From positions 1-64,000 of the forward strand of contig JAAILG010000007.1 of the NCBI GenBank assembly GCA_012026655.1: DNA of 64,000 nucleotides, in the 5' to 3' direction. Position numbers and translations under genes: made by a program. Positions 3,101 to 63,990 of this stretch are shown piece after piece (position 1 is the first letter of the stretch; each line of letters starts with the position of its first letter). The notes under the pieces are model-generated. The model did no database searches. It saw only the letters and a list, made by a program, of their open reading frames with translations, and was not told where the DNA came from. The stretch comes from Hydrolagus affinis. Lineage: Eukaryota.

Positions 3101-5477
3101 TGCAGTATCCGTGATGACAAAAATGGAAAATGCCTCTGATAACCCATCACTGCATCCACTGACCCAGTTGGAAGAAATGCTATTTCGGGTATCCCTGTTG
3201 TGCTGCTGACACGTAATGAAGTTTTATTGTAAATAATGAAAACTGTTGATTAAATAGCCCTTAAATATCATCACAGAAGACATGGAAAACCTGCACACTG
3301 AAGTCAGAAGCTGTGGTATTTGTCAGCGCGTGTACATTAACCTTGAAATAAGAGTATTAATAATAATCCTTACATTTGATACAGTGCTTTTCTCGTCTTA
3401 TAGATGTCTCAAGGAATATACTGTAAAGCGAATTGACTGTATAATTGAGGGCAAAACGCTGTTGCACTTAATTTACATCTAAACAAGAGAAAGTGCCCAG
3501 AACGGTACAGTGTGGTGGGTCGAATACAATGCGCGTTGTCATGGTAACAGAATTTGTTTTCAAATTGCAGTCGAGTTGATTTAAAATACAAGGCGCTTGT
3601 AGGTAGCATTCATTCAAAAGCAATTTGAAGCCATGATTGTTACTTATAAACGAAACTGGTTGTTGCTCTCTGAACAAACCTCCGTCAGTGTCTGGCGTTT
3701 AGGAAAGCTCGCGATTCAGCCCAACTTCTTTTTGTTATCCCAACAGAGATCCATTTGGTTTACGTGGGTTGAGATGTAGCGCAATGATCTTCAACGATCA
3801 ACTCAAGAGCCTTATAACGAGGCCATAGATATTCTTCCCATTGTCATATTCCATTGTGTCAAGCCGTGAGCGTGCCCGGAAGACATGTAACTGTGTGCTA
3901 TTTCACCACATTGTGTTAATAAGGGAATTCTAAAACTGTGACAAGCGCCCACAATAGTTCAGCTCGTGTTTCCAATGGTTTGACATGCAGAGAAACTGGG
4001 AAGAGGCACATGTCATAATTTCACCCACTTGATGTTTTTCGTTGTTGCCTAAACCGTGTCTCCAAATTACTTTAATGGCAATTACCGTCCTATCAAACGT
4101 AATAATATTATCATGAAATTATGTGTTCACTTTTGTCAGTCCATCCTGATGGATTTTATGAAGCACCTTTCCAAGGTTATATTAGCCAGCTTTGTATAAA
4201 TGCTATCGATTGTCAAACACCTCTGTAATTCAATCCTGAAATCGGCTTCGGTGCAACTATTTTGTTTAACAAATTCTGCTGCCTGAGCTATTTGAAGATG
4301 ATAATGTAATGTGTATTCAATAAGCACTTTGAATCATGTCAAGTTTGACTAACAAGTGAGCAATAGAGAAATCTCGATTGTTTAATGAACAGTAGACATT
4401 CTCCAGATCCGAAAGTGTTTGCTCGTTGATTTTTGCTCTTTCATCATTTCAATACATAATATGTATACAACAACAATAGCAACAAAATTACACTTGTATA
4501 GCGCCTTTCACGTCAGGAGAACGTCCCAAGGCGCTGGACAGTCATTGGTTCAGACCTGAGCTGGGATCAGTGGAGGGAAAGGGGTGACCGATGGGACCAT
4601 CGAACAGGAGGGTCTTGAGGTGGGACTTGCAGGAGGCTAGGGAGGAGGCGAGGTGGAGGGACTGTGGGATGGAAGAAGACATGGTACAGGCTTTCATTAA
4701 TAAATGTTTTGTTCTGCTGCATGTATCCAATGATACCAGCAGTAGTTTTCAGTTAACACAGCAGCCATAATGACTGCAATACATTTATTTCTGAGTGTTA
4801 AGTAACAAGAAAACGGGTGCGGTAGTTTAACTGTAAATTTCAAGATGCGATATTACTTTGCAGCAATATCTTGAAATAGCTTTTTAACATAATTGTTTTT
4901 TGGGAGGGAGAATCTTTTGCTTATGAATTGCCGGATATTGGTGCTGAAGAATGAAACGGTTTGGCATTTAGTGCTAATTCGCACAGGCCAGATAGAGTGA
5001 GGTGAGATTTAGAAACATCCTAGATAGCTCAGCACATTGGACATGGGACCAAAAGGTTCAAATCCTGAGGATTCCACTCAAGCCTTCATGCAGATTGATA
5101 AATACCAAGTACTGTTTCCCTAAGCGATGATAAGTGAAGGCTTTTGGGGTTCTTGATTCATATTTTGCATGCAACAACAAGATTAACAAAACTTCCCTTG
5201 TAAAAACCCTCAAACCATCTATCAAATTGTTGTTGTTGTTCAACTAGCTCTGAAGAGATTCTTCTTACAAGCTCCTGAGTATTTCAATGTGTTTGTGATA
5301 CCTTTCTGTCTTGGAGGTGTGTACATGTGCTTAGCTTTTAGGTTCATAATTCCTAGGCCAAACCCATTTTATTTTGGTACATTCATTCCATCAATTTGAC
5401 CTAAGTACAAGTTCCAGTAGTAAAGCAACAGTGGATTAATCCAGTTCATCACCCAACCCCTGCAAATATTTTTTTTA

Positions 5478-36700: not shown

Positions 36701-39700
36701 AGAAGCAGAGCGATTTGTATCATACAGTTTTACATGTCTGTGATAGAAAAATAATTGATGGACAAACAGACTTTTTCTAATTCCTTGCATTTTTTAAAAG
36801 TTCATCATCGTTGTATTTATGCTACTGAAGAGTAATTTAGAGCAGCATTTTATGTGAACATACTTCACGGCTGATTTACAAAATGCAATTGTCTTCACCA
36901 TCTCCAAGTAAATTCTTCCCGAACAAGAATTCTATGTTGGATATTTCTCTTGTTCAGACAATTGGCAGTCTGAAGACCCTTGAAGAGGAACTTGTCCCCG
37001 AGTCTAGGATCGACCTTGGTACCAATCTTGAGACCATTGCCAATTTGCAGGAGAAATTCAGTAAAGCAAAGCCACATTTACAGGTGAGGGCTGCTGCTTG
37101 ATTCCTGTTAAAATGCTGAATCACGCCGCACATTTAATTACTGAATAAGCTTACAACATTTGTGAGTATGCGAGAACTTCTCTCCACGAGTTCATCCAGA
37201 ACATGTAAACTAGATGAAAATATTAGCCGACAGAAGTACATATTCATCATCCTTTCCAATTTTTTTTAATAAAGGCTGATTTTGACGTCTTTGCTCATGT
37301 AGAATAAGGAATACGGTGAAATTATTGTGCATTTATATTATGTATATTTATTTTAATATTGGACTAGGGGTCAATATTTTATACGCAGCCACAGCTAAGT
37401 GAGATTGCATACTTTGAGAAGGTTTCTCAACTGACAGACTTACTGGTATTTAACGGTATTCAATGGCAGAGAAAGATTGACCAAGATATTAGTTTTAGCA
37501 GCTTGCTTTGGGAAAGATTTTGACCAGGCACTGTTTCCCTGCATCTCGTTATCACTTAATCTGAATTGCTTTTGTGGTTTTGATTTCATGACTAGCAATT
37601 GAACGCTGAGGTGGAGTATATTGTAAAAACGGCTGAGCTCTTGGTGCTGAAAGGTATCTCCCAGAAGGAAAAAAGTGAAAGGATTGTGGAGCTTCTCACT
37701 GTTCATCAGCAAGTCAACAAAACAATAAAAGAATATGAAACTGTTCTTCAGATGGCAGTTACATTTCATCGGACCACTCAAGAGGTATATAACAGAGTGA
37801 ACCTTTTGTTTCCTTAATTGATTTAGTTAAAGGGTTGACTCAACATGGTTCTGACTAGCTGGTATCTCCAATCTGCCCACCCTACATCCGTGACCTTCTA
37901 ACCCTTTACCAATCTGCCCACCCCCTCCGCTCAGCAGGCACTGGCCTGCTCAACGTTCCCCGACCCATTCGCCCCATCATTGGTGGGTGAGCCTTTAGCC
38001 ACTCTGCTCCAACCTCTGGAACTCCATCCCACAGTCCCTCCGCCTCGCCCCTTCCCTGGCCTCCTTCAAGTTCCGCCTCAAGACTCTCCTCTTCAATGGT
38101 CACATCGGCAACTCTTAATTCCCCCCCTTCCCTCCCACCACTGTACCCAGCTTGGGCCTGAAGCAGTGACGGTCCAGCGCCTTGGGATGTCTTCCTGACG
38201 TGAAAGGCGCTCTCTATAAATGTAATTTTGTTGTTGTTGTCCTCCTGACGTGAAATGCGCTATAACAAGTGTAATTTTGTTGTTGTTGTTGACTACACCC
38301 TGAAGCTTTAGAACTCTCTCCTGTCCCCTCTCTTAAATCACGACTAAAGACCTGCCTCTTTAACCGTGCACTCCCCCGGTTCTACATCAGGCTCAGCCAC
38401 TGTTAAGTGCTCCGAGACACTGCCCAATGTGAAGGGTCCTGTATAAATCCAAGATGTTGTTATTGTTGTTTGTTGTTTTCATCATTATTGTTCCTTTGCT
38501 ATGGATAATGACTATTTATTCCAGCTCGAAAGCCTAATGAGATCCGGAGACCTACATTACCCAGAATCAGTTGCCGTGTCACGGGACATCTCTCAAGCAA
38601 AGGCCCAACATAGTCACCATCAGCAGAAACAAGCTCATGTGCGCTATTTATATAAACTAGCCCTCACGTTGGCAGTGGATGTCATTTCCATTGTACAGCA
38701 TTCGGTAAGTTCGTCTTGCATTGCACGAACGTCTCACCTGGACACAAATTAGTGCTGGTAAACTCATACCGGTCTGCCTTTCTTTAACAACTATCATTTG
38801 TTTTGGGAATAGAAATCTGTTGTCGCTTCAGTGGAGTCGCTTCAGCGGAAACTCGAGGTCCTGGAAACTGACAGTATCCAATGGAGCGCAAACGCAGAGG
38901 AACATGGGGAGAAGCAGCAAGCAAACCTGGAATACTGCACAGCCAAAGAGGAAATACAAGAGGTTACATGTCTTTCACATGTTTTGAAATTCATAACCAT
39001 TTATATCTGCTTCAGACTTATTGATGACAAATCATTTTGCGCCGGGACAAATTCACTGTACAGCAGCAGCAATTTCAATGCAATGACAAAACGATGGCTG
39101 CAAAACACTGATTTTTACATTGTATCAGAATACAATGTGATCCCATATTTTTGAGTGCAGTAAAACACACATACAACAAAAAGCTATTTATTGCCTGCTA
39201 AATGAACGTTGTGAGTTTAAAAGTGAATTGAGCAGGCAGGTGCTCTTTTCCATGCAATTTCATCTCTTAAATAAATCGCAGACTTTTCTACCGGCAGCTC
39301 TCGTAAAATATTTGCTTTTTGACAGAATCTTAATGTTTGATCTGACACCTTCTAAATCTGAGCAAACAATCGGTTTAGAAATTCGGTTGTTCAATAGGGT
39401 CAGCCAGCTGGCGCTTCTCATCTCCTACAGTCAGAGAAAAGAACCCCTTTAAACACGATCAGTACATAACAGATTGTGTTTGTGTAACTGTGGCAGCGTG
39501 TTACCTTATTAGAGCAATATGTTTTCATAAACAGCATGATGAATGGCTTTGGATCATCTCACATTTAATGGTGAGGTTCTCAGCATCAAAGCTGTGTGAA
39601 AGAGGCGAAACATTGAAATTATTGACTTTACTTTTTTTTCTAACGTAAACATGTTAACATTTGAACAAGATGACCTTTTGCACTGGTTTCCATTTGATCA

Positions 39701-48700: not shown

Positions 48701-51700
48701 GATATAGCGCTTTTCACATCTTCTGGACGTCTTAAAACGCTTCACAGAATATACTGTAAAGTGAATTGACTATATTTTGTGGGCAAAACCCGGTAGCCAA
48801 TTGTGCACAGCAGTGTCCCCACAAACAGTTGTGGATTTATGTTCGTATCTGGATTCTAACCATAAATTTATTGTGGTTAGATCAATGCCAACCCTGGGGT
48901 TGGGGGGAAAAGGAAATCCCTTTAACTGTTATCATATCGCACATTGTTATTTCTGCTGCCAAACAAAATGTCTTGTGATGGAATCATATTGCTCTCCCTA
49001 GTTTTCCAGGGAATGTTTCATCCTGAATGGCGACAGACGCAACCCACAAAGCACGAAGAGGGAGGGTATATGTAGAGTTTGAGGAGGGTAGGAGGGGTGA
49101 TGCTTCTGTAATGTTTATGTTAAGTGAACTCCTTCTGCTTTCTCCAATGTATCAAATTGTACCTTTCCAATTTCTTCCCCCTGTTTATTTTCAAGGAAAT
49201 TTTAAACATTAAGATGGACCGACTGACAAACCATCAGATCACAGAATCGGTGGCGTGCGATCGATATTCACGGGAAACTACTGAGCATCTCTGTTCTTGG
49301 ACAGAGGGCAGCACGGTGACTGACGGAGACCCGCAAACTGAACTTTTAGTGGACGAAACCCTATCGGTGGAAGAATATGAATGCATGTCACCAGACGACA
49401 TATCTTTGCCTCCGCTTCCTGAGACTCCGGAATCGAACATGCTCCATTCTGAAACCGAACTGGATGAGGTGTCCCAATTAAGTTCTCATAGTCGGCATTT
49501 TGGACCTCACAGTGCAAAGCCACAAATGGAAATGGACTGGAGCAGAATGACTGATCGCTCTGACCCAGTAACACCTGTTGCCACGGCTGACACCATAAAT
49601 CATTCAAGACCGCAAGCTTCTCATGAGCCTGACTATTATTCATCTCGCTATTCAATTCCCTGCACCGGACCCTCCCCCGCATACAGATCTGAGCCTTCCT
49701 CTTTTATCCAGCACCCACTGACCATCCCTGCACCCACTCTCGTTTCCAGCACCCTTTTGAGTATTGCGGCATCCCAAACCGTGACTAAATCCTCAACCCG
49801 TGATGCTATCTGTCGAGTGCATGAGTCTCAGCTGCAGACCTACGACGTGCATGAGAGTGCGATTGAGACCCAGCAGTCACTACTGCATGAATCCAAGAGT
49901 GACCGGTTTGCAAACCAAATGGATTCTAACAGCAATGAATTCCATGTTTCAACTGAATTACTAACAGCACCCCTCGGTGTGCACCCACCCATGCATGACA
50001 CCGCAGGCCACCACAGAGAAACCATCATCCGGGAGGGCATTCGAGATCCATTGAACAACACAGCTGTGCGCTGCCTGACTGGCACAACACCAAGCTTCTC
50101 CAAGCTCTTATCTAATGTCAATGTGGTAGAAGGTTCTCCTGTGACCTTGGAAATAGAAGTAGCAGGATTCCCAGAACCAACTTTGACGTGGTGGGTAGCC
50201 TATAACAAGCAGCAGTAATATCTACATTGCATTCAGTTGGAGGTTCAGCATGAACTTCTGACAACGGGGCCTGATTTTATTTTCAACGTTGTTCTATTTC
50301 ACGATGCAATTGCGAACCAAATTGCTTTGCTTTGCAAACATTGGTATTTTCTGTTTCTGAAGCCAATGTAATAAAAATGATGTCCAAATTAGGTGCAACC
50401 GTAAGCTAAACTTCAAACCAGGAAATTATCCATACATCATAAGTAAAGTGGAGGATGGATAATTTAGACTTATAAAAAAGCAACCCATACATAAGAAAAG
50501 TAATATTAATACCACGATAGACATTCACCAAAAATGCACGATACCTTACAGTAAATCCTGTAAACCGCTTTGCGATATTTTAGTTGCGTAATTAGATACA
50601 ATATTGAATCAAGGAGTAATATAATTATTATATCATGAAGTCATTTCATAGAATATATTTTGCTGCAAAGGTGAGTATATTATGTACATTGCACCACCGC
50701 CAAGTAATTCTCATAAACGATTCGCAGTCGTCGAATGGTAATTGTTTAGTTCAATGGCAACACACTACTTTCATGTTGTCTACAGTATGGATCAGGATTC
50801 ATCCATGCAAAACCTTAAATTGTCGGGAGAAAAATAACCATTATCATTCCAATGTTTCTGCCATCATTTCTCCTCGTAGGGGAGAAAGGGTAAATCTGGG
50901 ACCAACTTGGCAGCCTTCTCCCAAGTCGTACATTCCTATATTTCTAAGCAAATTTAAATTCTTACTCGCAACAGATGACAATAACTTCACAAAAGTGATT
51001 CTTGGAATCTCATAATCCTTTAAGCTTCAATTTTTCATAACATTTGGACTTGCGTTAAGTCACTGAATTTGATATCACTAATTGTGCTCCGTTCACCGGT
51101 TTTGATGGGGGTTCGTGGTTTGAAGGAATACAAAGGTGAAGAAACATAACAATTATAAAGAGATTTGGAGGCCCTGGAAGATTGAAGTAAACCTTTGCAT
51201 GCTTTTGTCACACAGCTAGGAAACCAATGATAATTTTAGGATGAGAATGAATCCATTATAAATCACCTCCATCTTCCAGAGGCACAATGAAAATATGAAC
51301 CGCAAATCTTTGCAACTTTGAATATATTTCCAAAATCAGGTCCCAAGTTATCAGTTATTTAAGATTGTTACTAACACTTAACTTATTTTAGAGTTAGTTT
51401 GTCGTACTAAAAAATGTTACATACTTTGCTTATATGCAGTTAATATAAAATTCATATTCTGTCTTTTTAGATGTTCTTGTTTTAATCAGGTGTTTAACTG
51501 GTGTTTGTAACTGCTTGACTTGAAAATGCACTCTTTACTTCAGGTACAAGAATGGACAGAAGCTGACAACAGATCAGCGCTTAGAAGTTTCACAAAAGGA
51601 AGGCAAACACATTCTTTTCATTCAGAAGGTGTCTGATAAAGATTCAGGCATTTATGTTGTACGAGCTATAAACTCTAGTGGCACTATCAGTTCCACTGCT

Positions 51701-51820
51701 ATACTTCAAGTACAAGGTAAATGCAGTCTCGGATGTTTCCACACTGATCCTATAGACTGGCTCACCTTTCTAGCCTGGCTGTGCATAGTGTGTGTTAGTT
51801 TGTTTCTAATGTATTTCTAG
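6602..51820 (+). CDS. CCDC141: CCDC141 (CAMDI), 25 coding exons, about 5241 nt / 1746 aa for the Ig + TM-tail isoform
   Basis: Hand-spliced exons join in one continuous frame with matching phases. Peptides match recalled human CCDC141 ([92 protein letters not shown]). The gene lies directly upstream of TTN, as in other vertebrates. Confidence 0.96.
6997..7119 (+). CDS. CCDC141: CCDC141 exon 2 (SGKCVELQ...LLAKLK)
   Basis: cccttcag acceptor, AAG|GTACAA donor, phase 0/0. Confidence 0.93.
8945..9255 (-). mobile_element. L2 LINE 3' fragment
   Basis: Reverse-strand (GTT)n tail and L2-like 3' region, similar to 58950-59180 and 63650-63990. Confidence 0.75.
9309..9426 (+). mobile_element. CR1-type LINE 3' end inserted in a SINE tail
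   Basis: Near-identical to 1-133; flanked by the two halves of a SINE 3' end. Confidence 0.8.
11430..11700 (+). mobile_element. Ancient DeuSINE (SacSINE1-like) relic
   Basis: CTGAGTCAGAAGGTTGTGGGTT head and GGGAGTGTTGCATTGTTGGAGG...GGGAGTTCT...CCTGGCCAATATT Deu-like core; related copy at about 24090-24460. Confidence 0.6.
14752..14943 (+). CDS. CCDC141: CCDC141 exon 3 (GHEDDVW...DQALE)
   Basis: ctgaaag acceptor, GAG|GTTGGT donor, 192 nt. Confidence 0.92.
15105..15213 (+). CDS. CCDC141: CCDC141 exon 4 ([10 protein letters not shown]...QHVTK), GC donor
   Basis: ttttag acceptor; AAG|GCAAGT phase-1 donor that fits exon 5. Confidence 0.9.
16069..16385 (+). mobile_element. tRNA-derived SINE, near full length (Deu-like core, L2-like tail)
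   Basis: TAGCTCAATGG A box, GGATTCGATTCC B box, GGGACACTGCTGT..CAATTGGCTGCC core, CAAATGCAAGGATTA end. Confidence 0.85.
16386..16715 (+). mobile_element. Non-autonomous Helitron-like element
   Basis: Starts TC(TTCTATATATATAAAAG), ends ACAGCTAG, lies between A and T with no target-site duplication, and interrupts the SINE (ATT)n tail. Confidence 0.7.
16831..17084 (+). CDS. CCDC141: CCDC141 exon 5 ([12 protein letters not shown]...QRADE)
   Basis: ccacag acceptor, GAG|GTAGGA donor, phase 1/0. Confidence 0.93.
19735..19854 (+). CDS. CCDC141: CCDC141 exon 6 (VIQWIRQ...VSKAK)
   Basis: Spectrin-like W...LGSSL motif; AAG|GTAAGA donor; 120 nt. Confidence 0.9.
21162..21350 (+). CDS. CCDC141: CCDC141 exon 7 (GCAPERLE...YSSANK)
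   Basis: gtccag acceptor, AAG|GTTAGT donor, 189 nt. Confidence 0.9.
22593..22692. other. Assembly gap (100 N)
   Basis: Run of exactly 100 N in CCDC141 intron 7. Confidence 0.99.
22693..22882 (-). mobile_element. L2 LINE ORF2 C-terminal fragment
   Basis: [16 protein letters not shown]...[17 protein letters not shown], a typical L2 ORF2 end. Confidence 0.9.
26517..26802 (+). mobile_element. tRNA-derived SINE, same family as 16069
   Basis: Shared head, core and tail. Confidence 0.85.
29478..29780 (+). mobile_element. tRNA-derived SINE, full length
   Basis: TAGCTCAGTGG A box, GGTTCAATTCC B box, shared core and tail. Truncated + copies lie at about 575-750, 23160-23345, 25370-25545, 31040-31200 and 41840-42010; - copies at about 45660-45790, 48680-48840 and 54945-55180. 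Confidence 0.88.
29864..30036 (+). CDS. CCDC141: CCDC141 exon 8 (GFDVLG...KIGPQ)
   Basis: accag acceptor, AG|GTAAGA phase-2 donor. Confidence 0.92.
30483..30506. repeat. (TA)n microsatellite; others at about 31858-31890, 55033-55071 and 60885-60915, (CAGA)n at 31977-31998, (GT)n at 6358-6377
   Basis: Read directly from the sequence. Confidence 0.9.
30729..30870 (+). CDS. CCDC141: CCDC141 exon 9 (SRASGIQQM...DHFDK)
   Basis: tttag acceptor in phase 2, AAG|GTATCC donor. Confidence 0.9.
31708..31827 (+). CDS. CCDC141: CCDC141 exon 10 (VSIWLQ...SDQSK)
   Basis: 120 nt open frame, GSSLSESE motif, AAG|GTAAAA donor. Confidence 0.88.
32693..32884 (+). CDS. CCDC141: CCDC141 exon 11 (GVAKKIA...KYAEE)
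   Basis: cttcag acceptor, GAG|GTGGAA donor, 192 nt. Confidence 0.88.
33488..33664 (+). CDS. CCDC141: CCDC141 exon 12 (VEEAMQ...SSVLL)
   Basis: ttcag acceptor, CTG|GTAAGA donor, 177 nt. Confidence 0.9.
34972..35151 (+). CDS. CCDC141: CCDC141 exon 13 (TNESLS...EQVKK)
   Basis: ttccag acceptor, AAG|GTAGGG donor, 180 nt. Confidence 0.92.
36958..37083 (+). CDS. CCDC141: CCDC141 exon 14 (TIGSLK...KPHLQ)
   Basis: gttcag acceptor, CAG|GTGAGG donor, 126 nt. Confidence 0.92.
37596..37784 (+). CDS. CCDC141: CCDC141 exon 15 (QLNAEVEY...RTTQE)
   Basis: actag acceptor, GAG|GTATAT donor, 189 nt. Confidence 0.9.
37860..38292 (+). mobile_element. L2 LINE 3' end with duplicated tail
   Basis: Decayed ORF2 end and two tandem copies of CCTGACGTGAAA..GCGCT..TGTAATTTTGTTGTTG. 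Confidence 0.85.
38525..38704 (+). CDS. CCDC141: CCDC141 exon 16 (LESLMRS...IVQHS)
   Basis: ttccag acceptor, TCG|GTAAGT donor, 180 nt. Confidence 0.92.
38813..38962 (+). CDS. CCDC141: CCDC141 exon 17 (KSVVASVE...EEIQE)
   Basis: aatag acceptor, GAG|GTTACA donor, 150 nt. Confidence 0.87.
41331..41471 (+). CDS. CCDC141: CCDC141 exon 18 (LKESYKD...SEKIQ)
   Basis: ccttag acceptor, CAG|GTAAAT donor; highly conserved peptide. Confidence 0.94.
41581..41778 (+). CDS. CCDC141: CCDC141 exon 19 (IFKRKI...QAMEE)
   Basis: cttcag acceptor, GAG|GTATGT donor, 198 nt. Confidence 0.93.
42160..42343 (+). CDS. CCDC141: CCDC141 exon 20 (SQFWCEE...AMRLY)
   Basis: ctgcag acceptor, phase-1 donor G|GTTAGA; [12 protein letters not shown] motif. 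Confidence 0.94.
44778..44896 (+). CDS. CCDC141: CCDC141 exon 21 ([10 protein letters not shown]...KLQIK)
   Basis: Phase-1 ttcaag acceptor, AAG|GTACAA donor. Confidence 0.9.
45906..45983 (+). CDS. CCDC141: CCDC141 exon 22 (TDAPGQKK...EKENQ)
   Basis: Strong pyrimidine tract and caacag acceptor, purine-rich 78 nt open frame, CAG|GTAGCA donor, phase 0/0; little recognisable homology. Confidence 0.72.
46738..47268 (+). CDS. CCDC141: CCDC141 exon 23, S/T-rich (GENIIST...LEEQQ); alternative end at 47283
   Basis: 177-codon open frame with gacag acceptor; two in-frame candidate donors. Confidence 0.75.
47872..48600 (-). mobile_element. L2 LINE internal ORF2 fragment (start of RT domain)
   Basis: [15 protein letters not shown]...[11 protein letters not shown]...[11 protein letters not shown] on the minus strand. 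Confidence 0.85.
49196..50190 (+). CDS. CCDC141: CCDC141 exon 24 (large S/T/P-rich exon plus N-terminal half of the Ig domain); reads through to a stop at 50218 if unspliced
   Basis: Matches ORF 49124-50218; ttcaag acceptor, TG|GTGGGT phase-2 donor. Confidence 0.93.
51544..51820 (+). CDS. CCDC141: CCDC141 exon 25 (C-terminal half of Ig domain plus hydrophobic tail); internal donor after 51716
   Basis: WYKNGQKL...[14 protein letters not shown]...[20 protein letters not shown]; AATAAA at 51882. Confidence 0.92.
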
Positions 51821-52831
51821 TTTATTTAACTGTTATGTATCACTGTTTTGATTACATTGATGTTTTTCACCTTGTACTAAAAATAAAGTTGGTACCTGGC
51901 CTTACCACAAGTAATATCACAATGCAATGTTTCAATGCACTACCTCTGCACTGCAAAAGAGTTTTGAATGTTAACTTTTTTATTGAAAACTCCAAGTTTC
52001 ACTGAAATGCTGGTAAATGTTAATAATGTAATTTAAAACATTGACTGTTATTTCTCAGTAAGATATCATAATATTCCAGTACCCATGCACAGTATTAATG
52101 GAATCGTACTGTTAATAACACAATCAGTGACACTGATTAAAACCTTCACTGTATTCGTTCACATTCACAGTATTGTTAGCACAAAAACTGAGCAATTTGA
52201 CTTGGCAAATTAATTTGCACACTTTCTGATATCCTTATCTGTTTGCAAAGAAAAAAAATTTAAACTATTTTTATGACGAGTTTAAACCTATCTATATATT
52301 TTAACATATGAAACATTTTTTCTGAGATTTTTTTTATCTTCCTGATACTGTTTGTGTGATATGTTTTGGAATAGATGCAATGGAAAATTATTAGGTGGAA
52401 TTTTAGATGAATAGGTAGTGGAGTGTGTTAATGTTATTATGCACTGTGCACAGAGCAGTAGAAAATGTCCTGCGTTTTCCCCCAAACTGGTGATAGAGTA
52501 TACATTTGCAATCTGATAGCAAGACAGTGGCTGAAGTCTGGGAACAAACGAGAATGCCTGCACGCTCAGCCAATCTACCAGACAGAAGGAAGGGAGTAAA
52601 ATAAGAATTTACAATCAATGAAGGTTCAACATACTGTAAGTTATGACAAAGACTATAGGGAAGTCATACAAAAAAGCATTTAAAGCAAATTAATTCTGAG
52701 GCTGCATTGACTAAAGTATACATCGGATCACCAATATACTGTAATTACATTTCAATCTTCTATTAGGATGATGGAAAGGCTGTGTATCCCTAAAATGAAT
52801 TGCATTTCCCCCTGCATATTTCCCTATACAG

Positions 52832-53001
52832 CTTTGCAATGCGTTGACAACACTTTTATCAACAATTTATTGGTGCACTTGTATTGGTTCCTGGTATTGT
52901 CACTCTTTTCCATTGTGTGCATTGCAGTATTATTCCTCACCTTTGGTTCCACTCACTCTGAGACCAATGAAATCCAATTTATTGAATCTGGCCTTCGATA
53001 G
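52832..53001 (+). CDS. CCDC141: Putative alternative terminal exon of CCDC141 with a transmembrane helix
   Basis: Pyrimidine-rich acceptor (tttccctatacag) in phase 1; encodes (A)LQCVDNTFINNLLVHLYWFLVLSLFSIVCIAVLFLTFGSTHSETNEIQFIESGLR*. Confidence 0.55.
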
Positions 53002-53414
53002 TGGAATGGTATCCAATTTAACGAAACTGACTAAGAGACACTGAAACATGCAGCGTTAACACAATGCACTTTCTACTCTGCTCATTGCAATGAAAATACA
53101 CTGGACACGCTGGCCTGTTTCGAGTCCGACTTACATGGAGGTTGGATCAAAGGTAGCTCACATTAAAAATCACTTCTGATGTTCATATTTTACAATTTAA
53201 ATTAATTCCTATGTATGAAAGATGGCATGAATGCAGTTCCTCTCCCACATCAAACAAAACAAGGCAAACTAAACAACATGCAATAAGCAGAGATTAACTT
53301 ATGTTTTTTTTCTTATTTTTACATTTTGCTCTTGTAAATCAAAAAATGTAATTAAATTTAGGAGTATCTCCCTATGTCTCCCTACGTACATGTTCTACTG
53401 GTGCAGCAATATAT

Positions 53415-53620
53415 CATAGAATGTTACAGCACAGAAGGAGGCCATTAGGCCCATCGAGTCTGTACCGACTCTTTGACCGAGCAAGTCACTTTCATTAACC
53501 CCAATCACCAGCTTTCTCCCCATAACCCTGCAAACCCGTCTTCCCCAGATACCTATCTAGTTCTCTGTTAAAAGCTGCTATCGAATCGGATCTCACTACC
53601 CTTTCAGGCAGATCATTCCT
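53415..53620 (-). mobile_element. CR1-type LINE 3' end
   Basis: CATAGAATG..ACAGCACAGAAGGAGGCCATTAGGCCCATCGAG is the reverse of the CR1 terminus. Confidence 0.8.
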
Positions 53621-56600
53621 ATGGGTTACCAGTGGTAACTTTATGGTCTATGGTGTCAGATGTCATCTGAAGGCAAGGCTCGATTGTTTAATTCTGTTAA
53701 CTCTGGTACAGCACATAACAAATAACAGTTCAGCTGACAACTACACCTGACATTTCTGTTGTAGCATTCCTGGATATCGTTTGTATAAAAATGCAGTTGG
53801 GTGCAGGGACAAAGAACAAAGAGAAAGCAAACTTTGCACAGCTTGACCTCTCAGCAAGAATTAATAGTGAGGTTATTCTCCTCAACGGAAGTGAATTGAG
53901 TTTCATCACACGGTGGTCATGCACACTGCTGATGCATCTGAGGAAACCACTTGCATACAGTGTTGACCCAATAGTGATAAAGTAATCTTTGCATTTGATA
54001 TAGCGCCTTATCACGTCTTCAAGACGTCTCAAAGTGCTTCACGGAATATACTATAAAGTGTAGTGACTGTGCAGTGAAATTAGATATTTTAGCAAAGTGG
54101 CCTCTCTTAAAAAAAGGTGGAAACAGAAGAATATTTTGCTATTAGAATAATGCAGGAATGTAGTAATGTGACAGGAAAATGCCTTGCAAACTCAAATTTA
54201 TGCAAACCTGGACAACCTAAATGAACGTGGATGTATTTGCTGCAAAAATATGTTCACTTTGATATTGATATTCCTTCAAAAGTCAATCCAAAGTAAATGT
54301 TTACAGGGGTGGAGTTCATGCGCCTGAGGTGAGAAGCAATAGACTATATTACTAGTCTCAACAAATATACACATTGAGTGTATTGACCGGTAAAAAATCC
54401 AGAGTTGATTTTCATTGTATTAATGTGTCTCCTACTGGTTCAGATATAAAATAAACTTGAGATTATTCATTGTGTTACTAAGAACTATTATTTTTTTCTC
54501 AGATGAGTCTTGTTTTTGTGTAACAATGTACAATGTAAGGTCTTTGTGTGGCTTTTGTGTCAACATAACAACTGGAAATTTATAAAAATGATGCACTAGT
54601 CATAATGATAGCTCCCTCACAACCTCACACTTACTCGCAGTATATTGCTCAGTTGGTTGTCCATTCTGCCAATCAAATATAATTGATGTTTTTTCTTTAA
54701 ATCATTGAGCAACAAAGCCAAGTTGCTAGGGTTCTTCAGTTGGGAGAGGACAACTCAGAGGAGACCACATAGAAGGGTAGAAAATGTTAAATGAGATTGC
54801 AAAAATAAACCCAGATGAATCATTTAGGTTGTTTCAGGACAATAGAATAAGAGGACAAAGGTTCAGAGTTTTAAAGGATGATTTTAGGACAGATACCAGG
54901 AAGATTTTCTTTAGGCAGAACGTAATCAATAATAATAATAACAGTCCTTGCATTTGATATAGAACTTTACACATCTTCTAGATGTCTCAAAGTACTTCAC
55001 AGAATATGCTGTAAAGTGAATTGATTGTATCTATATATATATATATATAGTATATATATATATATATATATTTGGACAAAACGTGGCAGCCAATTGCACA
55101 CAGCAGTGTCTCACAAACAGTTGTGGATTGAAGTGATCAATTTATTATTGGTTTTTTTTGAGGGATTATTTTTAGGCATGTGAAGAGTGCCAATTGACTG
55201 GACTCTTGACTCATTTAAAAGGCAGCTCGTTTGAGGGAAGGTTGGTTGGTGTTTGGGAGGTATGAAATGGGATGGGCTGAAGTAATTTCTTTATATCAAT
55301 CTTGTTATCAAACCATTTTCTGGTCTTTTGGTTGAGATTTCCTTCAGCTACAAAGGGCCAAACAATCTCTGCACTGCTTTTCTTGGTGAAAGATGGGTCC
55401 AGGGGGGTGAAGTGCTGTTCCAAATGCAACTGCTCTAATAATCATGGTCTTCTTCAGCCTCTAAAATCATGATACAGTCAGACATTTAATCAAAGCCGAG
55501 TCCAGCATTAAGCAGCAATAGCTCCAGCTCTATGCATACGTGAGCTACCTTACAATTGCTCACAAGTCCTAAAAACCACAACAGCTCAATCATGGTGATT
55601 TAATTCCTGATTTAATCTTGGATGGATATTCAGATGAGACACTGAAATTAATTTCAGGAACTCTGAAATACGGAAGAGATTAGGGCATTGGGGGTGGGAG
55701 AGACTAGAAATTAATACAACAAAAGAAGAACTTTTTTAAAAGAAGTTACAGAGATAAGGTATATTCCTAAGAAAAGGAGACTAGCAGAAGGCTGAGACAA
55801 TAGTAGATTAATTGAGGACATCGGTTGTAACAAAAAGGTGCAGAAGGATTTAAAGGACTCAGCGAATCAAAAAATAGTATGAGATAGAAGTCTTATTTAA
55901 GTCTTAATTATTTGAATAAGTATTAGAGAGGCTAAGAAGAAAATAGAAGGATTGGTGAAAGTAATAAGAGGAATAATTTTAAGCTGTGTAGAAAGTAAGG
56001 GAACTTTAAATGCCCGTCTACTTATGGGAGCAAATTTGTGGTGATCATCAACAAATTCCTCCCAAAGGCTCTCGTGAATGAAAGCTGTGTACAAGCTCTA
56101 GATCTAATCAACAAGGAGTCTTTGGACAGTCTGAATTCTCTGGTTCTATAGGCTGAACAGAAATCAATTCACTTCACTGGCATTTTAGAATTCTTTTAAT
56201 GTCCTCAACATGAGAGGGGCCTGAAATTCAATCAAAAGGTAACCCGGCAACTGGCCTAATAACATCCCTTCATTTATTCCACATAGTCAAAACACTACAG
56301 CTGGTATTAATGTCAAATAAATCCGCACAGATTCACGGGAGCATTTGCAAGTACTGTAGAAGGAAATTGTAAGCTTCACTTTAAAATAAAGAGCCCGACA
56401 TTCCTGTCATCTCAATTCCAGTGATCATCTAGACGTGCACAAATAGGGCTGATTGTTGAGAGATTGCATTAATAGATAATGTATTACTGTCGGTTTTCCA
56501 AACCTTAGAAAATGTTTTCAGTTACAAGGCTGTGAAAAAGGCCAATTTAGTTTAATAAGGTCTACATAAAAGGTATTAGAGTGAAACATAGTACACCAGA

Positions 56601-57995
56601 CACCTCTAATTGAATTATTAATGCTATTTCATGAGTGATTTATTGAAGGATATTAAGGTATCACTAAAGCAGTCAGAAATCTTTGCCCCTGTATGAGAAA
56701 TTAATACAGAACAGTCTTACAAAGACATAGCTACATTGGGCTGCATATTGGAGTGAAGAAGTCCCAAGTACATGGAAAGTACTCATTTTAGTACCAATTT
56801 GATTGCTATTATTTTTGTGCAGGTTTATAGTCAATTTAATTTTGCTACATTCATGAATCTCTGAGAACATTTCTTTGTGAAATGAATTAATGGAGGAGGT
56901 AATTGTATCATCAGGATTGTCGCTCTATTCACGTCAACAGTTACCAACAGCAGGCGCACACGCAAAGATGCCCTAGAGGATCACATTGCTCATTTCTCGT
57001 GAGCTCTGCAACCGGGCACCATATGGATGTATTAATAGTCAGAACTATATGCTGTTCCTATTTAGTTTTTGCTGCCTATTGCATATATTTTATGCGGCTT
57101 ATGCATGAAACTCGTAGTTATTTGGTAAAAAAATATCACTTATTGGGAAGTGACTTGCTGAAATTGTTCTGTTTGAAAACAAAGTCAATTCAAACACCGT
57201 AGAAGATTAAATGAATCACAAAATGATTGTGTAGAAGTGTATTGAATGGATCATGGTAATTAAAACACACTGCATCTCTGTCAAGGAAAAAAAAGAAACC
57301 AACAACTTTGCTGTTCGCCGAGTGTGTTTTCACCATCGATTTCCCTATATAGTCTTGAGATATGCGCAAAGCCTGGTATTTGGAGTTGAGGAACAAATCA
57401 GCCATGATCTAATAGAATGACAGAACAGACTCAAGGTATGAACAGCCTTCTTCTGTTCCTATATTCCTGTAGATAGAAGGCTTGAAAAATTAAAATTAAA
57501 ATCTAATTAAATAAATAAATCTAAATTAAAAAAATGCAGTTAAACAAACTCTCAGTTAGCTGCCAATAGTATTCAAATTCCTTCATACCAGAACCATCCC
57601 TGGAATTAGCATTTTAACTCTCTACCAGCACAATCCTTTCAGTACAAGATATAGGCTATTGATAAACAGTGGATTGTATTGTGGTAAGTGTATTGCTAAA
57701 TTGATCAAACTGGCAACTTTTTCCTCGGTTCTTCTTTATCTGAAACATTCCATTTTCTCTCCATTATAGCAAACCCATCTGTGAAAATGAATCAGGAGTA
57801 ATTTGCATGGCCTTGTTTATTACAGTGGATGATTCTCTGCACGCTCTCTGTCTTTCTAATAAAGCGTTTTATCCAAAAGAAGATCCTTGTTCAAGAAACT
57901 TTATTTCTAAAAATAACTCTCACTGCTAACCTCATTCCACCATAATTACCCACAAAATGTATTTTTTTAAAAAGAACAATGTCATTTATTTCTAG

Positions 57996-58150
57996 TACAA
58001 GACAAGGCGCCTGACTTTGAAAAGAGATTTGCTGATTGTGTTTTGATGCAAGGGGATGATCTGATACTCCAGTGTATTATATCAGGACAACCCAAGCCAA
58101 GTGTGATGTGGTTTAAAGATTCCACAGTGCTGTCACCCAGAGATTCCAAT
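57996..58150 (+). CDS. Extra Ig I-set domain, N-terminal half (downstream exon)
   Basis: tttctag phase-1 acceptor; (V)QDKAPDFEKRFADCVLMQGDDLILQCIISGQPKPSVMWFKDSTVLSPRDSN; AAT|GTGAGA donor. Confidence 0.88.
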
Positions 58151-58272
58151 GTGAGAATCACTTGCTTTTATTTTTTGCTCCATTTACACACTCGTTTCGT
58201 TAGATAATTCAGGTGTAATCTGTTTAGTCCAGCACCCATTATTGAACGAGTGCAATGTGTTGTTTTGTTCAG

Positions 58273-58402
58273 GTAACAAGTTCAGGTGAAACGCATGTAT
58301 TCAGGAAAAGAAACGTTGGCTCAGCTGATAGCGGCTTGTATCGTTGTATTGCCACAAACACAGAAGGTGAAGTGTGCTGCTCTGCTTCAGTAGTTGTTAC
58401 AG
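58273..58402 (+). CDS. Extra Ig I-set domain, C-terminal half (downstream exon)
   Basis: ttgttcag acceptor; VTSSGETHVFRKRNVGSADSGLYRCIATNTEGEVCCSASVVVT; CAG|GTAATT phase-1 donor. Confidence 0.88.
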
Positions 58403-59269
58403 GTAATTATGGAATGATTTAATACAATTTAAAAATGTTTGGATATTTCCTGCATTATGTACCACAGTGCTTATCATTAATCCAGTGATGATAACCAGAT
58501 GACAATTATGGATTCAAGATAAAATGCTAACATTCAGGTTTGCACAGAACTAGGAGGATGCTCATTTCTCAGTCAAAAGGGTTGAAGATCAGATTGCGAT
58601 TCAGTGACAGTCTCTGGTGACTGGAGCGCTAAAGGTCGAAGCTAATCGTATTATTTCCAAGTAATCGACTGACAAAAGTTCTCAATAAACTTACAACACA
58701 GAAATTCTTCAAGCCAAGCTGCTGAATGTGAATGTGCAGCAACTACATGAAGAAGCCTGGGGGAGAAAAAAAACTTCAGCTGAGAACATCAGCCATTATC
58801 AGCTCAAAAATAAACTGAATAATGCCACCTATTCCGGTTATGGTAATCATGGAATTAAATCAATTATAGCAGACAAGGGGGGCCTTTGCACTCTTCAAGA
58901 CTATCTCTTCAAGATTGTGTAAGGTTCATCGATTGGGAGCTATCTAAACTAATACAACAACAACATACACTTATATAGTGCCATCCGCAAGGGTAGCGTC
59001 TCAGAGCACTTAACAGTAATGGAGCCTGACTCCGAGTGGGTGGGGTAGGTGACCATAAGCATGGTCGAAAAGGAAGGTTTTCAGGAGGGATATGAAAAAG
59101 GGGAGAGAGGAGAAAAAGCGGCAGGATTGAGGTAGAGTGTTCCAGAGCTTTGGGGTGTAGTGGTTGGAAGCGCGACATCCAATTTTAAGCCCCCTCCCTG
59201 CTCTTTCTCTGCATTGTTATGTATTCTACATCTTCAAATCCTTATCCAATTCCCTTTTTCCACGATTAT

Positions 59270-59530
59270 TATCCCCACCCTCTGGAACTCCATCCCACAG
59301 TCCCTTTGCCTCGCTTCCTCCCTTGTCTGCTTCAAGGACGGTTTCAAGACCCTCCTCTTCGATCGTGCCTTCTGCTGCCCTCCCAACTCTATCCCTCCCC
59401 ATCTAACTCTCTCCCTCCCGTTCCCACTACCCTGTCCCTCCGCTTGCTTGGGTCCCGACCTGACTGTTCAGCGCCTTGGGACGTTGTTCTGACGTGAAAG
59501 GTGCTCTAGAAATATAATTTTGTTGTTGTA
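59270..59530 (+). mobile_element. L2 LINE 3' end, head-to-head with a minus-strand copy at about 58950-59180
   Basis: [17 protein letters not shown] coding remnant and GTTGTT tail. Confidence 0.82.
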
Positions 59531-60328
59531 TTATAAAGACAATCCCCCAAACATTCCAGAAAACAGAATCCAAATAGTGTATAATGAATACCTTAGAATT
59601 GGATTTGATTTCCGACTGATTGTTACATCTACACTAATCTCTCTTCCACATTCATGACATCAAAAAAACATTAATTAGATGAGTCTCCCAATGATTTGAC
59701 TGCCTCCCTATTGTTCTCTTGAGAAATGCAAGCAGAAAAGGTAGGCATTTTTCAAGTTGAAAAATGTAGGCGTGTATGAGTTTACACCGTTCAACCTTAT
59801 CGTTGATTTGCAAGTGCTAAGCAATGTTTATTTCATTGGTTTGTCACCCTTAATATCATATAGCATCATCAGTACAGACATATATTGTCATAGTTAATGC
59901 TTAGGTTTGTGTTAATATTTAAGTGGCAGTTTATGATGAATGATGCTGTAAAAATCCAATTTTCTCACAGAAAGCAGTAAAACAGTCTGCGAGCTTTCAT
60001 TATGGGTATAAAACACTTAACCTCTAATTCTATATTTTAAACCATTTACTTCAATCAAACTTCTCCTTGTTGAGGGCAAAGGGTATTTGACCTGTCATTT
60101 GAAATCATATCCTATAAGATAGGTTTGACACTAATATTTAATCATGTTTCCAACTAGACCATCAATGCAAAAACAACTACAGTATTATAATGACTATTTT
60201 GTCTAAATCCACAGAATTTAAAAAGATCCATATAAAACCAGTATAACGTGAAAAATGCCTAATTGATGAATTTATACGCAATTTGGGGAAACATTTCTAA
60301 TTCCACTTGATCTCAATTGCCATTTCAG

Positions 60329-60491
60329 AAAAAACTAAAGGACAACTATGCACTTTTATCAAGGACACTGCTGAAAAAGGTCGTAAAGATATGACAATGA
60401 CAGTGACAACTGAATCAGCTGCAAATCTGAAATGCCTTGCAGCAAGTTATATAAAAGGCCAAAGATCAGAGATTGGACAAGTTCAGTTGGG
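60329..60491 (+). CDS. Putative linker exon between the extra Ig domain and TTN
   Basis: catttcag phase-1 acceptor; open frame (E)KTKGQLCTF...IGQVQL(G); GG|GTAGGT phase-2 donor. Confidence 0.5.
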
Positions 60492-61899
60492 GTAGGTTAT
60501 TCAACGTCTATTTATGTGGCAGCTGATGCCTTTCAGTTTGTGTCACCATGGAACACATAGGACAATCCTTCAAAATGCACATAACCCTTTCATATCAGAT
60601 TAAATGCAAAGATACTATAATAAAGTGAAGCAACACTGCATTGGAGTGTCAGTCAAGACTGTGCGCTACCAACTGAGCCACGCTGATCCCTTTACAGTAT
60701 ATACATACGTTTCTCTCCTCTTTGACTATGCCTTCGGCCACGCTCCGACCCTGCAGGCACTCCACTCTCCCTGATCCCAATCTCCCCCCATTCGGGTCCA
60801 AATCCCTGACTGTCCAGTGCATTGTGACATCCTCCCGATGTGAAAGTTCTTATACAAATGTTATTTTGTATTGTGTGTGGGTGTATATATACATATATAT
60901 ATATATATGTATATACACAGTTCACTTTACAATATGTTTTGTGGAGCTCTTTGAGAGGTCTCAACATTGTGAAAAGTTGGAGGGATTAGGCAAGGGTTGT
61001 CAGTACATGTAGTTTGAAATTGAAAATCTGAAATGTGAGGCGTTGAAGTATTCATTGTGGAACTACAGAGCACCCTGATGGGTTTACCTACATAAAATTC
61101 CTCATCTTAATTTTGCCCGGTAAAATCATCAACATCTCAGCTTTCGATTTGGTGTTAATAGATTTCGATTTGTTAGCAGAATTGTATTTTTATTGTAATG
61201 CAATATATAGTAAAAATAAATTTCTAATTTGATTAAGATGTAGCTTGCAGAAGTATAATAATCAGTTTCTCATGAATAGTTTCTACTAATAAGTTGAAAG
61301 TAGTGTAGTTTTATATCTCATTATATTTTAACAACTTAACCTTCAAATCAACCAAAGCAATTGGCCCCTCATTACGTTTCAGTCCACTTTTACAATGAGA
61401 TAGAATTACACATCATTCTATCTTATGCCCCTTTGAATATGTTGAGCGTCTTTGACTACTTACAAATACAAAAAGAAACAATTGTGGAATCCCCCACAAA
61501 AAATATTTCCGTAGTTTGGAGTTTGTCTATATTTGGAAACATTTGAATTAGATTTGCTCTTTTGTAAATAGAAGAGTTTTGCGTTTGGTTTGGTGATTGG
61601 CACATACAGTTGCTGGTGTCCATGTGTCAGAGGAGCAAAATGGTCTTGAAATTGATTGACAGCGACAGACAGGACTTGTGCATTCAAATGCGCCCTGTTG
61701 CTAAGGGCTTCATTCTTTCCTTATCAGTTTTGGTGATAACAAGAATACAGTAAGAATACAGTAAGAACCGACCAAGGAAAGGGTCTCAGATACATAGTCT
61801 GTTGTTACTTGAACTGAACTTAGTCATCGTGAGCAAGATGGTGGAATAGAACTAACCCTCAGAACTTAATGCGACAAAATTAGCACTGTCTGCATAAAA

Positions 61900-62053
61900 G
61901 TGAAGTGACTGACAGCTGTTGGGTTCCATATAACGGATCGCTTTCCCATGAAGCCTTGACGGAGTACCCAATCAGAGGTCTTGGGGTAATCATGCTGCAT
62001 AATTATCAGTAGAGCTGTGGTATAAAAGGTAAAACGACCATGTTAGCAATTCT
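61900..62053 (+). promoter_or_regulatory. TTN: TTN core promoter
   Basis: TATAAAA at 62021-62027, about 30 nt before the conserved exon-1 start; E-box CAGCTG at 61913; near-CArG CCATATAACG at 61926. Confidence 0.75.
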
Positions 62054-62270
62054 GAGCGGTTCAGGCACTCCCAGCCTTGCCTCGGGTGTAGGGATTGCAT
62101 AGGAAAATTAAAACTACACCCAGACCACAGCCTGCGTGTAGTTTTGTTTCCTTTTAGTAAGAGGTATACCCATTCTCTCGGTGGATTGTTGAAAAATATC
62201 TGGATAAGGAGGCAGTTTCCAAACCTATATTCCATAGGGCTTGGCCCATTTACTTAGGCACTCTTGAAAG
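62054..62270 (+). other. TTN: Titin non-coding exon 1 (5'UTR)
   Basis: Blocks CCCAGCCTTGCCTCGGGTGTAGGGATTGCATAG, AAAACTACAC..GTGTAGTTTTG and TTAGGCACTCTTGA match the human TTN 5'UTR as I recall it; AAG|GTCAGT donor; synteny with CCDC141. The start site is approximate. Confidence 0.85.
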
Positions 62271-62449
62271 GTCAGTAAATTTCTGTTTCTTACAAAGTGG
62301 CGTTTTGTTCCTCTTGATGCTTTGTTTAATTGAAGTTTTTTTTTAAGACAAGTTTTTAAGTTGTATCATATTCCCTCAAGTATAAGTGCCTCAGGAGCGG
62401 GAAAAGTGAATTTGAAATATACATTTTTAAACTTTGATCACTTAATTCA

Positions 62450-62900
62450 CACGTTAGTCGGTCTTTTGTGTATGAAATTCATCGTTGGACAACGATCAGT
62501 GTTGAAATATTTGGAAACAAACTCTGTTTGGGAAAATAGCTAGAAAATAGCTGTTTAATTAAATGAGGGAAGCCTAAAAGACGACTGTAACTTTTAAAGT
62601 TTTCAAGGTTAGGCTATGGATGGATGAATTGAGGACTGCTAAAAATAGTGCTGATGATATGCATGTGGCATCAGCCAGGCAGTGATGACTTTTTAAGGGA
62701 ATCAGTGCATGAGCTATTATTTGTACCACTAGCTATGTGGCACTTGTCCTCTGTCAATCATTGACATTTGGCTAAATTTAAACCTCAGCTCTTCAACCCC
62801 AAACCAGCTGATCATCGCTTATACAGACACCATGGTTCAGATTTAGAAAATGTTGCAAGCTCACTTACACTCCAATAAAGAACTACAAGTGGTGCAACAT
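62450..62900. promoter_or_regulatory. Candidate TTN intron-1 muscle enhancer
   Basis: MEF2 sites CTAAAAATAG (62639) and CTAAATTTAA (62772), NKX-type CACTTAA (62459), E-boxes CATGTG (62662) and CAGCTG (62805). Confidence 0.55.
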
Positions 62901-63649
62901 AAAGTTGTTTATCAAAGTTACTGGATTGTTGGCATTGCATATATATGTATATATATTGGTATTTCATTAAACGTAATATTTGCTATATCCTTTTTTTTAA
63001 TTGTGCAATTTAATTTAAATAAATGATTTATTTCTGATTTGATTTGAAAAATATTTTTCTGTTTCTTTCCTGAAAATACATTGATCAGAAAAATATCAAG
63101 CACTTATTAACACCTTTGCCTGCATTTGGACAACAAATATGATCTGTGATCATAGCAGGGCCAATCTGAAGTCATAATAATAATCATTGCATTGGATATA
63201 GAACCTTATCATGTTATTGAGACAGGTCAAAGCGCCTCACAGGATATGCTGTAAAGTTGTGTAACTGTGTGTATTTTGTAGGCAAAGTAGAAATGTTACG
63301 TATCACAAGTTTGTTTTATCTCTTTCTTTTTATAACGTCCAAAGCTTTTCAGTATCAACTGTTTTAATAGAACTTTGTCACAAACAGCTCGAATTACGTC
63401 CCACAAGTATCTATGGGGTTTATCCACACGCTAATGACTCACACCACAACTCCATCTCACATTACATAGCTCTGCTATAAGATAAAGAATAAAAGAAGAA
63501 CATAACACATGGAAATATCAAGATTAAATCTTCTTCAATATGAGGGCGAACTGCACACAATTTTAATGTTTCCTCACTAGAAACAGCTCAAAGGGGAAGA
63601 ACTATTTTAAATCATTGCCGCTAGTCAGCCAAATGCTGTGATTTATGTT

Positions 63650-63990
63650 GCTCGCATATTTACCCAGACCAGACTGTTTACCCCCATCTCACCAGTTTTG
63701 CCCGGGCTCCACTGGCTCCCCATCATCGAACAAATCGTCTAAGATCCTCACACTCGTGTTCAAATACATTCACTACATGGCACCTCCCTACCTCTATGAC
63801 CTCCTCACTCCCCAATCCACCACCCGGTGCCTCCGCTCAACTGGGACCGGTCTCCTACTTGTCCCTCGCACATTGCACTCCACCAATGGAGGTCGTGCTT
63901 TCAGCCACTACGCCCCCCAAACTGTGGAACACTCTCCCTCAATCCCACCGCCTTGCCTTCTCTCTCGCCTTTTTCAAACCTAAGTTTTCA
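63650..63990 (+). mobile_element. L2 LINE ORF2 C-terminal fragment in TTN intron 1
   Basis: KILTLVFKYIHYMAPPYLYDLL...GGRAFSHYAP. Confidence 0.88.

Follow-up and report, generated by a model that had tools for sequence, protein, structure and literature searches.

The first 64,000 nucleotides (nt) of contig JAAILG010000007.1 of Hydrolagus affinis (NCBI GenBank assembly GCA_012026655.1, forward strand), the whole stretch analyzed here and called the window below, contain a gene laid out like CCDC141 and, downstream of it on the same strand, a TATA-type promoter-like region that is taken to be that of titin (TTN). Both names derive from the layout, that is, an immunoglobulin (Ig) domain and a membrane tail followed by a TATA promoter, with no homology match behind either. 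The window has a G+C content of 38% and contains a 100-N assembly gap at 22593-22692, inside the upstream gene. Here, we describe a complete additional Ig domain (Ig2) that lies between the Ig domain at the end of the CCDC141-like gene (Ig1) and the promoter-like region, and weigh what this domain might encode. A first-pass annotation of the window had joined four exon pieces, namely the second half of Ig1, the two halves of Ig2 and a further open exon (exon X), into a chain that could fuse CCDC141 to titin in one reading frame. When the window sequence is read directly, all four pieces are present, and the coordinates, splice dinucleotides and phases assigned to them agree with it (Table 1).

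A complete Ig domain between the two genes

The two exons of Ig2 together encode one complete I-set Ig domain, far beyond chance. Every exon was searched separately against the databases, and in the search with the Pfam I-set profile (PF07679; 90 positions, curated cut-off of 23.7 bits) both halves of the profile were matched above the cut-off, in order and on one strand, so that a single whole domain is present and the two Ig exons claimed in the first-pass annotation are borne out. The core of an I-set domain is marked by a Cys in strand B, a Trp in strand C and the D-x-G-x-Y-x-C motif in strand F, and the Ig2 translations show the hallmark Cys, the Trp and the D-x-G-x-Y-x-C motif. In a scan of 51700-62060 for the strand-F motif, the Ig2 copy was matched at 58327, and the only other match, at 57010, holds a stop in its context. 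All four Ig2 splice sites are canonical, and the donors after 58150 and 58402 score 6.5 and 8.0, respectively, on rough frequency tables that were used for all splice-site scores given here. The domain is intact over 94 codons in two exons, in a region with 38% G+C and frequent stops, and the codons split by the two long junctions of the chain (GTA at 51716>57996 and GAA at 58402>60329) are not stops either. Ig2 is a real coding module and probably a functional one. Because no in-frame ATG precedes the domain core in the open frame of the first half, the domain would need an upstream coding exon.

Ig2 is not a recent copy of Ig1, because the intron places and phases of the two domains differ (phase 2 at the strand-C Trp in Ig1; phase 0 and further along the domain in Ig2) and only Ig2 has kept the Cys pair. 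Among structures in the PDB, Ig2 showed a similar degree of resemblance to titin, Robo, DCC, contactins and further proteins (196 sequences with E ≤1 for the first half and 69 with E ≤0.01 for the second), and by these matches it is a generic I-set domain, not a specifically titin-type one. The exon encoding the first half had an Atlas recognition value of 3055, with a best cluster score of 0.94, for I-set. A search of metagenome contigs for related loci produced a single locus out of 398 pattern matches, with 48% identity over 24 residues, which was rejected as an unrelated Ig gene; this locus (L001 5001-5093) is a generic Ig-like stretch on a 56.9-kilobase (kb) contig from the Joint Genome Institute (JGI).

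The end of the upstream gene

Helix-rich open frames lie upstream, at 14.7-35.2 kb. The upstream gene terminates with two C-terminal Ig halves, a hydrophobic tail, a stop and an AATAAA hexamer, and this end fits the layout of CCDC141 isoform 2 as given in the text of Hanashima et al. (2025, Commun Biol; PMC12657953). The last 19 residues of the unspliced tail form its most hydrophobic 19-residue segment, with a Kyte-Doolittle mean of 2.38, and the AATAAA at 51882 is likely to be the poly(A) signal of a tail-anchored form. Precisely on the boundary between Ig1 and this tail, after position 51716, lies a phase-1 donor with a score of 7.4. Equally good donors number one in 765 nt on the + strand, against one in 1818 nt on the - strand, and the presence of one within a few bases of the Ig/tail boundary is about a 0.4-0.9% event. 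Given this low frequency of comparably good donors, its placement is unlikely to be due to chance. In view of the Pfam halves, the donor score and its position on the boundary, the step made in the first-pass annotation from this donor to an extra Ig domain is a sound inference.

Between the tail and Ig2 lies a candidate alternative tail exon, 52832-53001. No Pfam match was found for it, and the hydrophobic segment in its phase-1 reading could make it a possible alternative membrane anchor, reachable from the same donor.

Table 1. Features of the region between the CCDC141-like gene and presumed titin exon 1 (a slash marks the exon/intron border).
Feature	Position	Strand	Description
Ig1, first half	50007-50190	+	Phase 1 in, phase 2 out; split codon TGG; Pfam I-set positions 1-36, E 8e-6 in a search with the surrounding open frame
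Ig1, second half	51544-51716	+	173 nt; acceptor ...ttcag/GT; donor CAAG/gtaaat; phase 1 out; I-set positions 35-90, E 7e-12 (51545-51715)
Unspliced continuation of Ig1	51717-51820	+	34 residues counted from the codon starting at 51716; hydrophobic end, then TAG
AATAAA	51882-51887	+	62 nt past the tail stop
Candidate alternative tail exon	52832-53001	+	Acceptor ...tatacag/; when read in phase 1, a second hydrophobic segment and then a stop
Ig2, first half	57996-58150	+	155 nt; phase 1 in, phase 0 out; I-set positions 1-44 (57998-58150), E 9e-9, 35.8 bits
Ig2, second half	58273-58402	+	130 nt; phase 0 in, phase 1 out; donor CAG/gtaatt; I-set positions 50-90 (58273-58401), E 3e-6, 27.8 bits
Candidate exon X	60329-60491	+	163 nt; phase 1 in, phase 2 out; donor GG/gtaggt, score 8.2; without homology support
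AATAAA	60619-60624	+	124 nt past the TAG after exon X; hexamers frequent here, so weak evidence
TATA box TATAAAAG	62021-62028	+	Read from the sequence; 1.53 kb past 60491; putative titin TATA box
Donor AAG/gtcagt	62268-62276	+	After 62270; score 8.6; end of presumed non-coding titin exon 1

Candidate alternative C-termini of the CCDC141-like protein

With a confidence slightly better than even, we read the exon chain as providing the CCDC141-like protein with alternative C-termini, the choice among which would be made at the donor on the Ig/tail boundary, and not as a route to a titin fusion. The last canonical exon would then be a composite, splice-or-stop exon. If the donor at 51716 is ignored, translation would run into the hydrophobic membrane tail, the stop and the poly(A) signal, and the product would be the tail-anchored form that mammals are known to have. 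Splicing at the donor would remove the tail, and the frame would continue either into the tail exon at 52832 or, 6.2 kb further on, into Ig2. The Ig2 form would most likely end soon afterwards, by read-through past 58402 (six residues and a stop, with an AATAAA at 58684) or in exon X with its TAG. At each of these two putative ends, a stop follows at once and an AATAAA is close by: past the unspliced 58402 donor, the stop is at 58420-58422 and a second AATAAA follows at 58809. Such hexamers are frequent, with 22 AATAAA or ATTAAA in 51501-62060. The splice-or-stop scheme is the most economical reading because it combines the boundary donor, the tail exon at 52832 and the intact Ig2. The exons and their phases, the identity of the domain, the tail and the stops are shown by the sequence, whereas use of the donor, expression of Ig2 and the transcript ends are all inferred.

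Several observations weigh against this reading. As regards the identity of the upstream gene, the Pfam spectrin matches on the upstream open frames remain below the cut-off (E 0.0084 and 0.073), and CCDC141 identity is without homology confirmation, a word-indexed protein search with the frame of the Ig1 second half and tail having come back blank. As regards splicing, the acceptor of the first half of Ig2 (57996) is rated at only 0.5 by the rough tables, and the strong donor after 58402 argues for downstream splicing past Ig2, which leaves exon X, or even titin exon 2, as a candidate for the next exon. No orthologue was found either: an exhaustive protein search with the 51 residues of the Ig2 first half retrieved 3471 proteins at E ≤0.001, the best 150 of which, as ranked on summed score, are giant multi-Ig proteins with 28-38% identity, and a local blastp comparison of five exon peptides with those 150 gave no orthologue-level match, the best being 48.8% identity over 43 residues for the Ig2 first half. 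The word-indexed search with the open frame holding the Ig2 first half was blank as well, and is uninformative, as the search is restricted to proteins whose length is 0.55-1.75 times that of the query, and blanks obtained with exon-sized queries carry no information. Finally, among the sequencing runs listed as containing this stretch, none is recorded as RNA: the one such run, of unknown kind and consisting of contigs, shares 0.54 of the words and is probably the source DNA, and three single-cell RNA runs that also came up carry the label of another organism.

Candidate exon X

In the first-pass annotation, exon X served as the link between Ig2 and titin. Its open frame, phases and donor stand as described there; that it is more than a chance frame does not, and it matched no family, structure or homologue. 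The frame is 64 codons long, one of 18 frames of at least 64 codons among the 44 of at least 45 codons on the + strand of 50000-62060, and the other two frames of the exon contain several stops. Pfam produced no convincing match for exon X (best E 0.13, an unrelated family), the word-indexed protein search was blank under the same length rule, and no match at E 1e-3 was obtained against the best 150 multi-Ig proteins. A weak PDB match to FCRL5, seen with a 53-residue query (22.8 bits, 0 stretches passing), was lost with the full 64-residue frame. The Atlas recognition value of exon X was 1360, with a best cluster of 0.75, versus 3055 and 0.94 for the similarly short first half of Ig2. The possibility that exon X is half of a third Ig domain was rejected, with no Ig profile or structure match to the exon and no strand-F motif downstream of it, and so was its origin as a repeat, as no second copy was found in the window, unlike the case of 58954-59531 and 60805-60978.

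Within 58420-62000, exon X is the only candidate internal exon that opens in phase 1, at every threshold tried. The number of such exons expected by chance was estimated by scanning the window's opposite strand as a control, and is expressed as phase-1-in exons per 3.58 kb. With the splice scores of exon X itself as the threshold, the expectation is 0.06; with those of the weakest sites admitted at other points of the chain, it is 0.64-0.87; and with a looser donor, it reaches 1.27. When an exit in phase 2 is also required, the corresponding values are 0.06, 0.29-0.35 and 0.52. A single candidate is compatible with chance.

If left unspliced, exon X is followed by one more codon and an in-frame TAG at 60493-60495, which overlaps its donor. 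Given this stop one codon past the end and the AATAAA at 60619, exon X could be terminal, and it would work equally well as a last coding exon.

Competing explanations

The best-surviving alternative to a choice among C-termini, to which we assign a minor probability, is that Ig2 is an unexpressed relic of an Ig-rich linker in an ancestral SESTD1-CCDC141-TTN gene, that exon X is a chance frame, and that only the tail-anchored form is made. Phase-1 compatibility would in that case be inherited and need not mirror current splicing. The absence of RNA-recorded runs among those listed for this stretch, the lack of a homologue in the searches described above and the single Ig domain of vertebrate CCDC141 in the published accounts, as their texts present it (PMC12657953; Hanashima et al. 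2025, J Mol Evol, PMC12198301), are all in line with a relic. Against a relic stand the 94-codon frame, intact over two exons despite the low G+C content and the frequent stops, the retention of all of the hallmark residues and all four canonical splice sites, and the strong donor exactly on the Ig1/tail boundary.

An improbable alternative holds that read-through transcripts spanning CCDC141 and TTN are produced and encode no fusion, because the joining of 51716, 58402 or 60491 to titin exon 2 is out of frame or runs into a stop, and that such RNAs are degraded or regulatory. Of the three donors, two exit in phase 1 and the third in phase 2, so that at most one of the two classes could be in frame with any leader. 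Joint transcription is on record in the literature, and a figure legend in PMC12657953 marks stop codons ('S') on the diagram of CCDC141 with the spanning transcript.

The fusion proposed in the first-pass annotation would require transcripts from the CCDC141 promoter to join 51716>57996, 58402>60329 and 60491>titin exon 2 and to skip titin exon 1, which would yield a titin extended at its N-terminus, in one frame, by spectrin and Ig segments. The phases fit throughout the window, no junction codon is a stop, the donors after 58402 (8.0) and 60491 (8.2) are strong, and exon X has no competitor as a phase-1 entry in its interval. Ig modules of titin-family genes are commonly phase 1-1 exons, so that phase compatibility is weak evidence of present joining. 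The link, exon X, is without Pfam, PDB or homologue matches, has a low protein-likeness and an in-frame TAG over its donor, and belongs to a class of which chance supplies 0.06-1.27 per interval (0.06-0.52 with phase 2 out). The transcript would further have to cross several AATAAA signals and an active promoter, and the final step leans on the 13-nt leader that the first-pass annotation gives for human titin exon 2, the exon 2 of H. affinis being outside the window. Precedents do exist: mammalian RNAs that join FLJ39502(CCDC141) and TTN are cited, and the sallimus (sls) locus of Drosophila yields zormin as well as titin isoforms (both as cited in the texts of PMC12657953 and PMC12198301). Against them stands the statement, in PMC12657953, that the mammalian pair is 'transcribed from separate genes'. 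On balance, an in-frame titin fusion protein is unlikely, and the complete route just outlined is, in our estimate, very unlikely. We are just as doubtful of its evolutionary variant, in which Ig2 would be a living remnant of a linker in the ancestral gene 'connectitin', with Ig2 and exon X still included in a low-abundance, one-frame CCDC141-titin mRNA, so that some titin molecules would have an N-terminal extension of spectrin repeats and Ig domains resembling the zormin-Sls products of insects.

The least probable explanation, that Ig2, with or without exon X, provides alternative 5' coding exons of titin from a promoter between 51.9 and 58 kb, draws on the proximity of Ig2 to the presumed titin promoter (only 3.6 kb) and on its matching titin Ig domains as well as any I-set domain, but Ig2 is equally near the Ig domains of Robo and contactin, opens in phase 1 and lacks a start codon before the domain core. 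No further open frame with a domain was found either, none of the 10 tested + strand frames of at least 61 residues in 52.8-61.8 kb having a Pfam match at E 0.01.

Presumed titin promoter and surrounding sequence

The first-pass annotation had placed a TATA box about 1.5 kb past position 60491, and the sequence agrees with this placement; its function as a promoter is putative. Upstream of the TATA box, at about 61720-61745, there are GATA-like motifs (CTTATCAG and TGATAA). The sequence CTAAAAATAG at 62639-62648, within what is presumed to be titin intron 1, is a perfect match to the consensus of a MEF2-type site.

Interspersed repeats were observed at 58954-59531, 60805-60978 and 63887-63976. 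They have several relatives in other parts of the window, among them those near 4480-4673, 8953-9170 and 38009-38237. An open frame of 112 codons that starts with an ATG at 63645-63983 is probably not a gene; at least part of it lies over a repeat copy, since the opposite strand of 59093-59181 is matched by its 3' end. The segment 60880-60920 is a TA/CA microsatellite that attracts sub-threshold mir-297/466 matches. A search of 51500-62060 against Rfam returned 5 matches, all far under the gathering scores, including three mir-297/466-like matches and one resembling a Pestivirus 3' untranslated region, all of these over TA/CA-rich repeat stretches. A scan for bacterial promoters and terminators gave signal at the level of shuffled sequence and is irrelevant for this DNA.

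Significance

CCDC141 is a titin- and nesprin-binding protein of heart muscle. If Ig2 is expressed, this lineage would have a soluble CCDC141 with two Ig domains beside the membrane-anchored form, the choice between them being made at a single donor. If true, this would amount to a simple and testable switch between anchoring at the nuclear envelope or the sarcoplasmic reticulum and binding to the sarcomere. For the evolution of titin, an Ig module that has stayed intact in the interval separating it from CCDC141 would also be physical evidence for the published hypothesis that the three neighboring genes were once one, and a real in-frame fusion, if true, would surprise titin specialists. The general idea of an ancestral gene and of joint transcripts is already published, and the extra Ig module is modestly interesting.

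Comparison with known systems

In the article texts searched, no published description of a second Ig domain between CCDC141 and titin was found. The arrangement at the end of the H. affinis gene is otherwise like that of mammalian CCDC141 as described in the text of PMC12657953: in isoforms 1 and 2, the Ig domain is spread over the last two exons, the last of which combines an Ig half with a transmembrane tail; the isoforms differ in the presence of the tail; and the gene lies directly upstream of titin. Unlike mammalian CCDC141, which according to the same text has one Ig domain and 24 exons, the gene described here has a strong donor where Ig1 passes into the tail, and 6.2 kb downstream there is another complete Ig domain.

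The wider evolutionary setting has been laid out by Hanashima et al. (2025, J Mol Evol; PMC12198301), whose main text derives SESTD1, CCDC141 and titin from one ancestral gene, connectitin, on the basis of synteny and of genes from cnidarians and placozoans, and regards CCDC141 as the counterpart of Drosophila zormin, to which it is taken to be orthologous. The framing of the locus in the first-pass annotation, with one ancestral gene and a zormin-like product, thus was already in print. A remnant of the region that once connected the two genes would be expected to look like an Ig module placed between them; the passages of that paper examined here include no vertebrate intergenic Ig module. 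The text of the other study uses the phrases 'an overlapping transcriptional unit' and 'joint transcription events of FLJ39502 ... -TTN' (PMC12657953), and both papers cite Labeit et al. (2006, J Mol Biol) for joint FLJ39502(CCDC141)-TTN transcripts in mammals. The proposed fusion embodies the same idea, that of an RNA spanning both genes and pointing to a relationship as isoforms, which is reported for mammals.

For the Drosophila sls locus, with its zormin, kettin and Sls/D-titin isoforms, the texts of both papers (PMC12198301, PMC12657953) cite Burkart 2007. As in sls, a protein with spectrin repeats and Ig domains, the counterpart of zormin, would be encoded 5' of a titin-like gene. Zormin, however, is an accepted product of the same gene and contains several Ig domains (texts of PMC12198301 and PMC12657953), whereas in H. 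affinis the number of Ig domains would not exceed two and the parts are separated by a promoter-like region.

The mechanism that we favor, a choice among C-termini, has a known parallel. The secreted and membrane forms of immunoglobulin mu arise from a composite terminal exon, through a choice between splicing and polyadenylation. As in immunoglobulin mu, an internal donor in the terminal exon of the CCDC141-like gene would pick between two C-termini, one of them membrane-anchored; unlike in immunoglobulin mu, it is the unspliced form that would be anchored here.

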